This document shows, piece by piece, positions 9,611 to 15,619 of a DNA stretch of 29,102 bases. The first letter of the stretch is position 1; every line of letters begins with the position of its first letter. A program made the position numbers and the translations under genes. The notes under the pieces were generated by a model. It was not told the DNA's origin, ran no database searches, and saw nothing but the letters and a program-made list of their open reading frames with translations. The stretch covers positions 1,974,610-2,003,711 of the forward strand of contig JAWQFM010000008.1 in the NCBI GenBank assembly GCA_033442325.1. Reading direction: 5' to 3'. The stretch is from Salpingoeca rosetta. Taxonomy: Eukaryota > Protista > Choanoflagellata.

Positions 9611-10030
9611 ATGTCGGCTCGCCACCTCGCAGCTGCGTTGGTTCTTGTCGCCGCTGTTCTGTGGAGCGCGGCGATAAGTTGCCAAGCCACCGAGGAAACC
9701 TGCAATGACCAATCGGTGCTGCTGCAGATTGAGGGCCTCTTCAATGAAATGGACTCCGACAACTCCACGACCATCGTGTCAGCAGAATACACGGCATATT
9801 GCGCCTCTGATATCAACGGCACTTGCCCCAACATCTCTTTGTGAGTGCAACTGTATCGCCTGCCTCCTGTCTGCCCTCGGCTTCCTTTAGTGCGCTCGTT
9901 GTTTGTGCGTTCATGTCTGTGCGTGCTTTGTTTGCACCTGTGCCATCATGCATCCTCTCTCTTGTTGATTCGTTTGAATCAGCGCGCACGCGCTTGGCAG
10001 CAGGGATGCATGCTTCATCCATTCGCTCGC

Positions 10031-10101
<71 letters not shown>

Positions 10102-13100
10102 TTTGTCACTTGCACCAGCTCACACGTCTCTGTTGTGGTGCACTTGCGCTCTACTCATCACCCACCACCCCAACACCGGTGTCTTCCATTGCAGGGCCTT
10201 TTCTTTTGACACCGACGGCAGCGCGTCGTTGGACCCGCACGAGTTCCGCACGCTGGTGTGCTCTCTGCTGTTGAATGGAACGGACATTGCTGCCAACGCA
10301 ACGACGACGTCGGCACCACCCACATCAGGCGCCCTCTCCACCACCGCCACGACCAGCACCTGCCCGTTTGGTGGCTGTGGCGTAGGAGTGTGCGAGGAAG
10401 GCCGGTGCGTGTGCCCGTCAACGCACACGGGCGACGCGTGCGAGTTTGAGCTGTGCGCGGACACCCCTGGCGACTGCATCAACGGTGGCGAGTGCATCCA
10501 GCACAGCTTCGGCGGCCAGCAGACCCAGGAGTGCCTGTGCCCTTCCAATGCGTGGGGTTGGACGTGCGAGTATGTGGAGTGCGACCAAGGCATGTACCGC
10601 AACACAAACACGGACACGTGCGAGAACATCACGGCGTGCGCGTACCCGGCGCAGTACGAGGCACAGCCAGCCACGCGCTCCACGGACGCCATCTGCCTGG
10701 CCGTGTCTCCCGCGTGCGACTTTCCAAACACATATGAGGCGCAGGCGCCGAGCGAAACGCAGGACCGCGCGTGCTATCCCGTCATGCCGTGCTTTCCAGG
10801 GCAGGTGGAGGTGCAGCCACCAACGCCAACCAGCAACCGCGTTTGCCAGTACACCACGACCACCACAAGTTCCACCACGATTGCGACAACGACAACAACC
10901 AGCAGCAGCAGCAGCAGCAGCACCACCACCACCACCACCTCAACCAACTCCACGTCCACAACAACAACAACAACAACAACAACAACCACAAGTTCCACCA
11001 CCAGCACCACCACCAGCAGTGCGAGCTCGACTGCGTCGTGTGCGGGCGTGACGTGCCTCAATGGCGGCCGCTGCCGTGCTGGCAGGTGCGTGTGTGCGTC
11101 TGGGTGGGTTGGGGCCGCGTGCGAAGCGTCGGCCAACACCGCTGTCGTCAATTCCCGCGGCAACATCACCGACCTTAACCGCATCTACCGCCTCTCAAAC
11201 CAGGAGGCAACGCTTATCAACCCCTGGCACGCCTGCGCCAACCAGACCTGCCGCACCGTGTTCGCTGACGGCGTGTGCGACCCCTCGTGCAACACCGCCG
11301 CGTGTGTGTTTGACGGCGACGACTGCGTGGCCATCGCCCCCATCTGCAAGCAGGTGGCGGCCGGCACATGCACGTTTGGTGGCGACGCGTGCAACCCGGC
11401 GTGCGCAACCTCCGAGTGCCTCTGGGACAACAACGGCTGCGGCACGTGGGATACAGGCGACAACAGCCTGGCTTACACACTGCGCCTGTTTCTGGACCTT
11501 GAGCTGTCTGTGTTCACAGGCCGCGTGCAGAGCACGTTTGCATATCGCCTCTCCCAACGGCTCGACGGGTTTGTCACCTTTGCCGCTGTTCGCCAAGCCG
11601 TCATGTTTGGTCCATCATCGTCGCCATCATCAGCAGCATCTGCCGCAGCATCGTCGTTGTCGTCGTCGCCGTCATTGCTGAGTGCCTCCTCCGCCATCGC
11701 CAACCGTCCATGGCGGGCGCGGCGCGAGGGCGATGTTGCGTCGCGTCCAGTGCTCCAAGTTGACGCCACCATCACCCCGCGCTGCAGCGTCAGGTGCATC
11801 ACCTCCTCGCAGGCCGCCGCAGGATATGTCAACGCCATTGTCGCCGCTGGGGCGTCCTCGTCTGATCTTGGTGTCCCCGTGCTCCGTGCACAGGCAACGA
11901 CATCGGGCAATGGCGGTGACGGTGGCAGTGGTGGCAGCGTGAGCGTGTCGCCTGCGGGCGCAGCCACCATCGCGGGTGTGTGTTTGCTTGCACTGGGTGT
12001 GCTGGTTGTGATTGGCGTTGTTGGCAAAGGAGCCAAGCGACGAGTGACGATTGAAGCCATTGAGCTGCATGAGGGTGGCGCACACACCAGCCCGCCACCG
12101 CCACCGCCACAAGTTGATGATGCTGCGGCGTGGAGCGATGGAGGACCGCTCCCGGCCAAGCGAGCACGCCACCACCACCACCAGCAGCAGTACGAAGACA
12201 GCCCGCAGTTCAGTGGCAGGATGGCGACGGCTGTGTCGTCATCGTCGTCGCGTCTGCTGGCGATGCGCGGAGATGACGACTTTGACCCCAACATGGACCA
12301 TGCTGCTTATCCCCGTTTTAAGAGCAGCACCAACACCAACAGCAGCGTCACGTCACCACAACACCAGCACCAGCACCACCAGCACCAACACCAGCAGCCC
12401 GAGTACCAGCCGCTGCCGCGGCGCCGCAGCTCTTCGGTGTCGTCGTCGTCGTCGGTGGCTGCTCTGATCCGCACGCTGAGTAGGAGCGCCAGCACCTCTG
12501 CAAAGGTCTGGCCCGCGCCCCAGCCACCAGCATACACCGAGCACGATCCACACCAGCAGCAGCAGCAACAACGCCAACAACAGCACCAACAGCACCTGCA
12601 ACAGCACCAACAAGACCAGCATCAGCATCATCAGCAGCACTTGGCCCGTGGTGATGACGCCCTGTTCTCGCATATGGGGGCGATTGGTGAGGAGCAGGAC
12701 GATGATGGCTGTGGTGGTGGTGAGACGGCGCTGGACGCGTTTATCAACTCACAGGCACAAGGAGAATGCAGCACAACCACGGGCACCACTCATCACAGCG
12801 ACAGCAGCATCCCTGGCACGACTGACACGTGGATGGGCAGCGAGCACGCCAGTATGGCGAACAGCCCTGCGGAGAGCGCGTGCACGGGGTCGAGTGTGCA
12901 CGGCAGCGCCATGGCCACCAACCCGCTGCTGCTGGACAACGACGCGCTGGACTTTGCAGTGTTCTCATCGGATGCTCATGCACTGATGCACAGCGACCAC
13001 CAGCACGGCGCTTACGACGACGCACACAACGTCCGCTTTGATCGCCATCACCATAAGCCGCGGCCCGTGCTCTCGCCCATTGTTGGCGACGTTGATCTTG

Positions 13101-15214
13101 ACCAGCAGCAGCGGTATGGGTGGCAGTCTGATGGTGCTGATCACGCGGGACCCGTGCCCGTGATCGGTGTTGGCGATGGCGACGTTGGTGGCGACGATGC
13201 GTTGCGCCCTGCACCGCTGTGGTCGCCTCACACCACAGCAGCACCACCGCCGCCGCCGCCCATGATGGCGCTGCATGGCGACGACGACGGCGCGATCACC
13301 AATGACGAGGACTTGATCCGCGCGTGTGCACGGGACTTGGCGGCGGCGCGGCGGTCTGCAAACATCGGGGTTGTTGTTGCCAACACGCACGCGCGCGCAG
13401 CTGGCAGCGTTGCTGACCCACAACAACAACAGCAGCAGCCAGACGTGCACGTGCACCCCTCGCGTTACTTACACCTGCAGATGACCGGCGACGGCAGCTC
13501 TTTGTCGCTGGAGCAGCTGTGCACAGACATCACACCCGTCCTGCCGCGCCGTGCTATTCCGGCACGCAGCGAGCGGCAGCACAGCACCCAGCGGTACGAG
13601 CAAGGCAGTGACGCTGTTGGCCCTGCTGTGTCTCATGCACAGCAACACGAGTCATCGTCATTATCACCACTTGTGCGTGGTGGGGAGTGGTCATCGCCGG
13701 GCAGTTCGCCGGGTGACGGCAGCACGACCGCCAGCACCACACCGCCACAGGGCCATACGCCGCGCTCACATGCTGACGATGATGACAACGACGATGACAA
13801 CGACGACATTGCTCATGATGGCGACACGAGTGGCGGTTCTAGTGCACAGGGTCACGTGCACGCTCACGCCAGCCCGCGCGAATCGCACCAGCCACCGCGC
13901 ACCGCTGCGCCGGCCGTGCCCTGCGCGCCCGCTTCATCTCCCCTGGCGCGGGCATGCACAACAGCGTCTCCAACGTCACAACTTCCGCCACCACAGGAGC
14001 AGCAGCAGCAACAGCAGCAGCAACAGCAGTCGTTGTGGAGTGCTGATGATGCGCGCAATGAACAGCGGGAGCTGTTGGCCGCATGTGCGTCTGCGAGCGC
14101 TGTGGAACGCGGTGCCATCTTCACTGCCCTCTTGCAACTCGAGTCGGCAGCATCATTATCCTCATCACCATCATCATCGTCGTCGCCGTCGTCAGCATCG
14201 CCATCAGCGCGTGGAGCGATCGCGATCGCGACCACGAACACAACGCCGTCGTCGTCGTCCGCGCCCTCTCCGCAACAGATCGGCGACGACGAACCCACAG
14301 CCCGTGGTGGTGATCGTGGTGATGGCCCTCGTGCTGGTGATGGTGCGGGTGTGCGCGCGTTCCTGCGTGCCATTCCCTCCGGCGAGCTGCTGTGCGTGGC
14401 CGGCCCCCGTGGCGAGACGCTGCTACACATGGCGTGCGAGGCGCAGTGCATGCCTGCGGTGCGTGTGCTGCTTGCGGATGCGGTGCGAGCGTCGGCGCTG
14501 CTTGCGACGAGAGATGACGACGGCCGCACGCCGCTGCACATTGCCGCGTCCGTCGGCTTTGAGCCCGGTGTCGAGGCCATCCTCAGCCTCAGGACCCCGC
14601 AGCCCAGGCCCGGTGCTGCTCGTGGCGCCCGCGGTGCTCGTGGTGGTGTTCACAGCAGGGATGGCAACAAGGGGCAGCGAGGTGGGCCATCAGCTGATGT
14701 TGATGTTGATGTTGAAGTTGACGTTGATGCTGCGGACAGCACCGGTGCGTCGCCGCTGATTGCGTGTGTGCGGCAGCGCCAGTTGCGGTGTGCCAAGCTG
14801 CTGCTGCGGGCGGGCTCGAACCCGGACCATCGCGACGTGCGCGGGTGGGCGGCCGTGCACTGGGCGGCCGTGCAGAACGACGCGAGCGGCGTGAAGCTGC
14901 TGTTGGCGTACCGTGGCGACATCAACATCAAGACCAACAACAGCCAGACGCCGCTGCACCTTGCCACGCGCGAGGGCAACGTGAAGGTGGTGCAGCTGCT
15001 GTTGAGCAGATTTGCCAAGCGGCACGTGGAGGACGCGTTTGGGCAGACGCCCGCGGGCCTGGCGCGCGAAATGAAGGACACAGCTGTTTTGCAGGCGTTT
15101 TCGTCCACCACCTCTGTGTCTGGTCGTGGTGGCCAGGCCCTGCGCAGCAAGCGGCCCGCTGCCCCCAAGATGCCGCTGCTGCGACGCGGCAGTGGCGGCG
15201 GCAGCACAGCGTGA
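9611..15214 (+). CDS. Notch-like single-pass receptor, ~1749 aa: signal peptide, EF-hand pair, EGF, TNFR-like Cys repeats, Thr/Ser stalk, 2 LNR, NOD/NODP-like, TM, low-complexity linker, ankyrin repeats
   Basis: Exon 1 9611-9840 (|GTGAGT) and exon 2 10195-15214 (GCAG|), phases match, 5250 nt. Signal peptide MSARHLAAALVLVAAVLWSAAISCQA. EGF at ~10361-10444, 10454-10570, 11039-11125. LNR PWHAC...DGVCDPSCNTAACVFDGDDC (11222-11326) and second LNR (11345-11440). RARR at 11714-11725. TM at ~11960-12025 followed by KGAKRR. Ankyrins GETLLH, GRTPLH, GASPL, AVHWAA, QTPLHLATREG, GQTPAGLA (~14400-15100). Confidence 0.92.
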
Positions 15215-15619
15215 TGCCAGCGTGTTTGTATGTATGCGTGCGTATGTGTTTGGAAGCGTGTGCGAATATGGTTGACGATTGTATGTGTGTGCACGTATGT
15301 TTGACGTGTTGGCATTTGTGGAAGTGTTGTTTTTTGAAGTGATGTGTTTGTTGGGTTGGTTCTGACAGCGTGTGCACAGTGACTGTGTATGTGCAAGAGC
15401 TGGTGTTCCGGGGGGGGGGGTTGTTCAGTGCTCTTTCTTGCGGTAGCTATCTTGGGTGGTTTGTTGGATTGCGGTATTCTTATGCAGCAGTGGTGGAGAT
15501 GACATGGTGTTCTGCTTCTTTATTTGACGTCTTAACTGATGAATGAACACGATGACATGAAATGATACAACTTCTTACACGCACGTGTGTGTGTGTGTGC
15601 GCGTGCGTGTAGGTGTGCG

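Follow-up and report, generated by a model that had tools for sequence, protein, structure and literature searches.

The membrane-proximal tail of a Notch-like receptor in the choanoflagellate Salpingoeca rosetta: a candidate nuclear localisation motif resembling that of animal Notch, and no hook for CSL

Whether Notch signalling existed before animals is an open question, on which published work has considered domain order alone and has conceded that convergence by domain shuffling is possible. The stretch of DNA analysed here (the window: 29,102 nucleotides of the S. rosetta assembly GCA_033442325.1, contig JAWQFM010000008.1, positions 1,974,610 to 2,003,711) encodes a Notch-like receptor, and the segment of its cytoplasmic tail next to the membrane (window 12026-12172) raises the question of how such a tail would signal. 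An earlier note on this DNA had described the segment as a region like the animal RAM domain, with the CSL-binding WFP motif replaced and the nuclear localisation signal (NLS) retained, and had proposed that the intracellular domain enters the nucleus and signals independently of CSL. The observation was confirmed in part and its interpretation was supported in part. The explanation that we favour, to which we give roughly an even chance, is that the segment is the disordered membrane-proximal start of the tail of the only Notch-like receptor found in the genome, that it has no CSL hook and carries a tryptophan-acidic/KRxR (W-acidic/KRxR) motif, and that the tail would be released and imported without docking of RAM to the beta-trefoil domain (BTD) of CSL.

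Motifs of the juxtamembrane segment

Read in frame +2 of the window, the segment runs from the transmembrane (TM) helix through KGAKRR, VTIEAIELHEGG, an acidic proline run and WSDGGPLPAKRARH into histidine and glutamine, and the translation bore out the strings quoted previously together with their positions (KGAKRR starting at 12026, IELHEG at 12059, WSDGG at 12131 and AKRAR at 12155). The likeness that had been seen between WSDGGPLPAKRAR and the W-S-D-D..P-K-R-x-R segment of animal Notch proved to be non-random. Indeed, a motif hidden Markov model (HMM) made from animals only (5 protostome sequences) aligned WSDGGPL--PA-KRARH at 10.6 bits, a score that no shuffle attained in any of three sets of 5000 (the first 150 residues, the 773-residue disordered part and the whole tail), and the best score in an own-genome background of about 60,000 residues, taken from six-frame open reading frames (ORFs), was 4.8 bits; a regular-expression control for the motif gave 2.5e-5. 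A chance match is unlikely, even allowing for the handful of alternative motifs that were open to the author of the earlier note.

Between the TM helix and the ankyrin (ANK) domain, the tail has W-x-(D/E) and, no more than about 12 residues further on, P..K-(K/R)-x-(K/R). Animal Notch sequences carry W-S-(D/E)-(D/E)-(D/E)..(P/A)-K-(K/R)-x-(K/R) between RAM and ANK, and the same block is found in the alignment of Gazave et al. 2009 (Additional file 1, PMC2770060) in Trichoplax (W-N-D-G-E-T-P-P-R-K-R), Lottia, Aedes, amphioxus and vertebrate Notch1 and Notch2, with W-A-G-D-G-G-P-Q-P-K-R-V-K in chicken Notch2; the Amphimedon row is ambiguous at this block. We infer that the S. rosetta motif is a homologue of this animal motif of the RAM-ANK linker, and the sequences suggest that W-acidic/KRxR is probably an ancient NLS-like motif, older than the link to CSL.

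Apart from the basic half of the motif, KRAR (amino acids (aa) 772-775), the 1062 residues of the cytoplasmic part contain no K(K/R)X(K/R) site; KRAR lies in a region of disordered composition and fits the monopartite core of the classical NLS consensus, K(K/R)X(K/R) (PMC3128743). According to the same source, the putative NLS1 and NLS2 of mouse Notch1 are dispensable for import and NLS3 is the working site (PMC3128743). The animal counterpart is therefore a putative and not a proven NLS. NLS1 and NLS2 are here assumed to be the signals on the RAM side, and NLS3 the one past ANK. An NLS alone does not explain the conserved tryptophan and acidic residues. Nuclear entry of the tail would be consistent with the KRAR site. 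A 2025 ctenophore preprint did not succeed in finding NLSs in every holozoan Notch-like protein.

The statement that the tail is without a PhiWPhiP CSL hook at the RAM position was upheld, and no hook was found elsewhere in the tail. A strict scan found no PhiWPhiP in the whole tail, and within about 20 residues of the membrane, where the hook of a RAM region stands, neither tryptophan nor proline is present at the position. A position-specific scoring matrix (PSSM) of the animal GITWFPEGF motif, used instead of HMMER, which has no power on the 12-residue WFP motif, gave over the whole tail a best score of 1.0 bit that did not fall at IELHEG and that 2147 of 5000 shuffles equalled. With regard to the resemblance claimed between KRR-5 residues-IELHEG and KRR-5 residues-LWFPEG, the spacing was confirmed on the vertebrate Notch1 rows of the Gazave 2009 alignment, and the residue similarity was at chance level. 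The residue-by-residue alignment of IELH with LWFP was accordingly rejected, and the absence of the hook stands by itself. 'ELH' and 'ELQ' recur in two relatives, P0002 and P0013.

Overall likeness to animal RAM regions was not found with a profile of nine such regions, a low-power test: the first 150 tail residues scored 2.3 bits, which 157 of 1000 shuffles equalled or bettered. Among the controls, the sponge Sycon scored 15.1 bits (0 of 1000 shuffles), and one nematode Notch also failed, so that the power of the profile is limited. A phmmer search of the juxtamembrane region against all PDB chains, RAM-containing Notch included, returned no Notch and only His-tag artefacts. Two distal sites, VWPAP and LWSP, had been put forward as weak alternative CSL sites; the former does not fit PhiWPhiP, the latter scores below chance in the PSSM scan, and neither tryptophan is kept in Barroeca. 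In the Notch of the calcareous sponge Sycon ciliatum, ..TVKIFPEP.. stands 10 residues past the TM helix in place of PhiWPhiP-EG, the tryptophan being missing, and the Amphimedon row of the Gazave alignment has ..GIWHVDG.., without proline, at the place of the hook.

Among the matches, the closest protein is that of Barroeca monosierra, whose tail from TM to ANK is almost unalignable with that of S. rosetta and near the membrane has only AKR and PQVD in common with it. In Monosiga brevicollis, the Notch-like protein (Gazave 2009, Additional file 4), compared by eye, has AKRR after the TM helix, no hook, and about 125 residues into the tail A-W-T-E-D-R-S-L-P-T-K-R (AWTEDRSLPTKR). Among environmental LNR-TM-ANK proteins identified with Pfam, P0002 has GAKRR, ..TELH.. 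and ..GLPAAKSAR, and in P0008 and P0009 another basic cluster follows 40-60 residues past the TM helix. PhiWPhiP near the membrane was found neither in M. brevicollis nor in Barroeca nor in the environmental LNR-TM-ANK relatives compared. The motif is patchily conserved, with a version of it in M. brevicollis and none at this position in Barroeca. The motif is not under uniform constraint, as its absence at this position in Barroeca indicates; W-acidic/KRxR appears to be recurrent in the family and not uniformly kept. A further choanoflagellate-type LNR-TM-ANK protein, P0014 (JGI metagenome 3300046028), carries DLSWLPPGF 72 residues past the TM helix, which scored 11.1 bits against the PSSM of the animal WFPEGF hook, with 3 of 5000 shuffles as good.

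The receptor gene and its putative partners

The segment is held in a 1789-codon open frame (window 9845-15214, + strand; ORF list and translation). In three stranded RNA-seq runs, cover was unbroken over 10091-15400, with the RNA on the + strand, and absent across 9894-10090, a TG-repeat stretch that is an intron. Apparent joints within the exon were rejected as introns, being without GT..AG ends and due to cross-mapping of CAG/CAC repeats; with the unbroken cover, this places the segment in an expressed exon. At 12573-12574 and 13420-13439, CAG/CAC tracts showed high apparent depth, base differences and joints that go back, which are most simply cross-mapping reads from other Q/H-rich genes and not editing.

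The order of the receptor is EGF-like, LNR, TM, a disordered tail of about 770 residues and ANK repeats (Pfam, Kyte-Doolittle). Pfam gave Notch/LNR at 1.3e-12, with two LNR stretches, and ankyrin (Ank_2) at 5e-39 at the C-terminus; the EGF matches were below threshold (EGF_2 17.5 against a cut-off of 22.1, EGF_Teneurin 20.8 against 24.3). The TM helix is the sole such hydrophobic segment past the signal and intron region. LNR N-terminal to a single TM helix and ANK C-terminal to it, on one polypeptide and in one transcribed exon, constitute the architecture of the Notch family. In a PDB search, ankyrins and designed repeats came on top for the ANK domain and Notch ANK was outside the best 60; PDB rank was set aside as uninformative about ANK orthology. 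The final ankyrin repeat and cap (15020-15094, ..LLSRFAKRHVEDAFGQTP..) are near-identical in Barroeca and by eye resemble the ..LLDHFANRDITDHMDRLP.. block of animal Notch (also given as ..FANRDITDHMDRLP..). In the genome searched (55.4 Mb, 68 contigs), the only other LNR match, at C12:294378-297443, adjoins exons with ..LYLNDDVMFG.. and ..CAVGCADHWLGDRYCD.. and was discarded as a Notch paralogue, as it is by eye an apparent GlcNAc-1-phosphotransferase (Stealth/LNR). The receptor described here is therefore the only Notch-like one found in the genome.

The tail is disordered in composition, with 16% order-promoting residues, a net charge of -42 and 52 histidines, and in its 773-residue disordered part both lysine (6) and tryptophan (7) are scarce. 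Acidic-hydrophobic stretches at about 12720-12750 and 12930-12960 (aa ~960-970 and ~1030-1040; ..ALDAFI.. and ..DALDFAVF..) resemble activation-domain motifs, and have counterparts in the tails of M. brevicollis (..DDLDFLGAL..) and Barroeca (..MENFIF..). The features of the locus are collected in Table 1.

Table 1. Coordinates of the receptor exon and of the features of the encoded protein (positions of the window).
Feature	Coordinates	Strand	Basis and remarks
Large second exon of the Notch-like receptor gene	10184..15214	+	ORF list, translation, Pfam, stranded RNA-seq
Best-scoring LNR (Notch/LIN-12) repeat, aa 461-494	11225..11326	+	Pfam
Transmembrane helix, aa 709-727, GVVG end	11969..12025	+	Kyte-Doolittle mean 2.84 over 19 residues
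Stop-transfer basic cluster KGAKRR	12026..12043	+	Translation; AKR(R/G) recurs in Barroeca, P0002 and M. brevicollis
VTIEAIELHEGG, without W or P, at the place of animal PhiWPhiP-EGF	12044..12079	+	Chance-level likeness to the animal motif
Proline-rich acidic spacer (..SPPPPPPQVDDAAA)	12080..12130	+	Translation; PQVD common to Barroeca
W-acidic + P-x-P-A-K-R-A-R-H motif, candidate classical NLS	12131..12172	+	Animal-only motif HMM, regular-expression control
Distal VWPAP	12506..12520	+	Present; no PhiWPhiP fit; W not kept in Barroeca
Distal LWSP	13217..13228	+	Present; below chance in the PSSM scan; W not kept in Barroeca
EWSSPG	13685..13702	+	Sole tryptophan motif of the disordered tail common to S. 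rosetta and Barroeca (GWSSPG, tail position 551)
Ankyrin repeat domain, conserved C-terminal cap (..FAKRHVEDAFGQTP..)	14372..15094	+	Pfam, Barroeca comparison

The search for a CSL gene that the earlier note had suggested was carried out, and a CSL/Su(H) gene was found on contig C1 (~709649-712815), with at least 8 short exons split by TG/CA-microsatellite introns. Its exons were searched one by one. The exon of the N-terminal domain (NTD) matched Su(H) and RBP-J structures at 5.7e-12, the TIG domain was detected at 3.8e-15, and two beta-trefoil exons, which align to consecutive stretches of the Pfam BTD profile, reached no more than 16.8 bits each. These two had no match in PDB even at E=10, and a third beta-trefoil exon was unrecognisable. 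A genome scan with Pfam BTD had yielded nothing, because the domain is intron-split and divergent, and inspection of the ORFs then located the exons.

In RBP-J, the residues E260, F261, V263, K275, A284 and Q333 bind RAM-type peptides, F261 and A284 mattering most (PMC9825171). The blocks of the contact residues (..EEFTV.., ..YGSTVKL.., ..GMALPRL.. and ..RIIQFQ..) are near-identical in the sponge, placozoan and mollusc rows, with M/L and E/D differences only. The six residues were placed on these blocks by what we take to be the mouse RBP-J numbering, and the spacings agree. At the equivalent places in S. rosetta, read by eye on unjoined exons, stand A, R, S, T, L and G; all six contact residues thus appear substituted, and this by-eye alignment of separate exons did not reveal a CSL that has kept the pocket of the beta-trefoil. 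Pocket residues are also missing from fungal CSLs (Prevorovsky et al. 2007, PMC1973085), and the CSL of M. brevicollis has Lag1 and IPT domains and no beta-trefoil, Monosiga ovata having all three (Gazave 2009, PMC2770060). A very divergent trefoil fits the absence of RAM-BTD docking. Independence of CSL, which had been proposed for the tail, does not follow from it: the missing hook does not prove such independence, since NOTCH1 without RAM can still associate with RBP-J and activate transcription, according to the title of Aster 1997. Presenilin is encoded by a multi-exon gene on contig C5. No Mastermind was found, a genome search with MamL-1 having given only matches at the level of bacterial controls.

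Proposed release and import of the tail, and the alternatives

The segment comprises a stop-transfer basic cluster, a hookless acidic-hydrophobic stretch, a proline spacer and, 36 residues past the membrane, the W-acidic residues with P-x-P-A-K-R-A-R. According to the explanation that we favour, the ectodomain would be shed and gamma-secretase would then cut the helix at its inner end, which would release the tail. Importin-alpha would bind KRAR, and the tail would carry its ANK domain and its acidic, Q/H-rich stretches into the nucleus. No docking of RAM to the beta-trefoil of CSL with high affinity would occur, since the tail lacks the hook and the S. rosetta CSL appears to lack the pocket residues. 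For RAM-BTD docking, this tail of the Notch family would thus have neither the lock nor the key. That the WFP motif had been replaced, as claimed earlier, holds with respect to its absence; replacement implies loss, and this part is not sustained, as the named choanoflagellate relatives have no hook and fungal CSLs no pocket. More likely, the PhiWPhiP hook never evolved here. The docking pair of hook and pocket was probably gained on the animal stem, which is the simplest explanation for a hook that is missing, and a pocket that appears to be missing, in both S. rosetta and M. brevicollis, and for pocket residues missing in fungi too.

Several points weigh against this explanation. In Barroeca, the closest relative, both IELHEG and WSD..KRAR are missing here, and only DGWSTDDPL is found, about 335 residues into the tail and with no basic cluster after it. 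The whole-region RAM profile does not rise above shuffles, and the ANK domain looks generic, Notch ANK not being among the top PDB matches. With the dispensable signals ahead of NLS3 taken as RAM-side, the animal counterpart of the motif is a putative NLS. The mapping of the CSL residues was made by eye on separate exons with the presumed mouse RBP-J numbering, and the substitutions read from it are to be taken as apparent; cleavage, release and nuclear entry of the tail are proposed steps. Finally, the WLPPGF of P0014, together with the detectable beta-trefoil of M. ovata, may leave a scenario of loss open.

The tryptophan and acidic residues are not required for a classical NLS and belong to the part of the motif that is invariant across animals, and this would fit an old conserved short linear motif of Notch tails that serves not for import but for docking a trafficking, ubiquitin-ligase or kinase partner. 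The W-acidic half kept without the basic half in Barroeca, and the dispensability for import of the mouse Notch1 signals ahead of NLS3, taken as RAM-side, point in the same direction. Nevertheless, a docking motif of this kind seems unlikely here: the tail has no site of the classical consensus besides KRAR, the basic half is the part kept in P0002, P0008 and P0009, and no alternative class of partner motif was matched. Quite unlikely, in our judgement, is a segment with no specific function, that is, a fast-evolving disordered linker whose match to animals is a coincidence aided by post-hoc choice of the motif. It would agree with a tail that is almost unalignable between TM and ANK even with Barroeca, with the lack of significance of the region-wide RAM profile, and with the fact that human Notch1 had been compared for one half of the segment and fly Notch for the other. 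It is opposed by the scores of the motif (0 of 5000 shuffles; own-genome maximum of 4.8 against 10.6 bits), by the co-occurrence in the right order and spacing of residues as rare as lysine and tryptophan (6 K and 7 W in 773), and by M. brevicollis, which independently carries AW-T-E-D..LP-T-K-R.

The tail might also still act through CSL without a RAM hook, either by ANK binding to the Rel-like domains of CSL or by another peptide that fits the divergent beta-trefoil. CSL is present with well-conserved NTD and TIG, the association of RAM-less NOTCH1 with RBP-J (title of Aster 1997) offers a precedent, and the EWSSPG/GWSSPG motif is conserved in the tail; against this stand the failure to find a Mastermind that would clamp an ANK-CSL complex, an ANK domain without specific likeness to Notch ANK, and the apparent changes in the beta-trefoil contact residues, and we regard such action as distinctly improbable.

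A short linear motif common to choanoflagellate and animal tails, at the same relative place in a disordered region, would be evidence of common descent of a different kind from domain order, and the joint absence of the tail hook and of the CSL residues that bind it suggests an order in which receptor, cleavage machinery and nuclear-targeting motif came first and coupling to CSL later. A wider reading, in which W-acidic/KRxR is a pre-animal functional module, the choanoflagellate proteins are true Notch homologues and not products of convergent domain shuffling, and the ancestral receptor signalled by cleavage and nuclear entry before hook and CSL pocket were jointly gained on the animal stem, is put forward tentatively, as a possibility that we hold to be rather doubtful. 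S. rosetta is transfectable and editable, so that each step is directly testable.

Comparison with known systems

The Notch-like protein of M. brevicollis was already reported in 2009 (PMC2770060) and choanoflagellate Notch was described by domain order in 2018 (PMC6040629); the literature searched was found to describe neither the tail motif common to choanoflagellates and animals nor a hook and pocket that are missing together. The closest parallel to the segment is the RAM region and RAM-ANK linker of animal Notch (fly Notch, vertebrate Notch1/2, Trichoplax), which occupies the same place directly past the TM helix of an LNR-TM-ANK receptor and has in common with it a basic stop-transfer cluster, disorder and the W-acidic + P-x-(P/A)-K-(K/R)-x-(K/R) motif. 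Unlike animal Notch, S. rosetta has no PhiWPhiP-EGF hook and no detectable DGQEM, W-T-Q-Q-H-L or TPPQGE blocks. Its motif, 36 residues from the membrane, is nearer to it than in the aligned animal sequences, and is followed by about 740 further residues before ANK, several times more than in those sequences.

The Notch-like receptor of M. brevicollis (Monbr1:35907; Gazave et al. 2009, PMC2770060) resembles that of S. rosetta in its EGF (in S. rosetta EGF-like), two LNR, TM and ANK domains, in AKRR past the TM helix, in having no PhiWPhiP, in the AW-(S/T)-(D/E)..LP-x-K-R motif and an (S/A)KR..HH stretch, and in coexisting with a CSL without detectable beta-trefoil; it differs, in this by-eye comparison, in a motif lying ~125 residues past the TM helix and in a much shorter tail. 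The choanoflagellate Notch proteins of Richter et al. 2018 (Mylnosiga fluctuans and partial ones; PMC6040629) were identified by the order EGF-Notch-TM-Ank. That study, which considered domain order only, left homology versus convergence with animal Notch open and listed S. rosetta among the species in which Notch was undetected (PMC6040629); the tail motifs seen here are discussed neither in it nor in the 2025 ctenophore preprint. On the side of CSL, the fungal proteins (PMC1973085) offer the nearest likeness, with DNA-binding residues kept, coregulator-pocket residues missing and no RAM-bearing partner, and S. rosetta differs from them in that its genome also encodes a Notch-type receptor.

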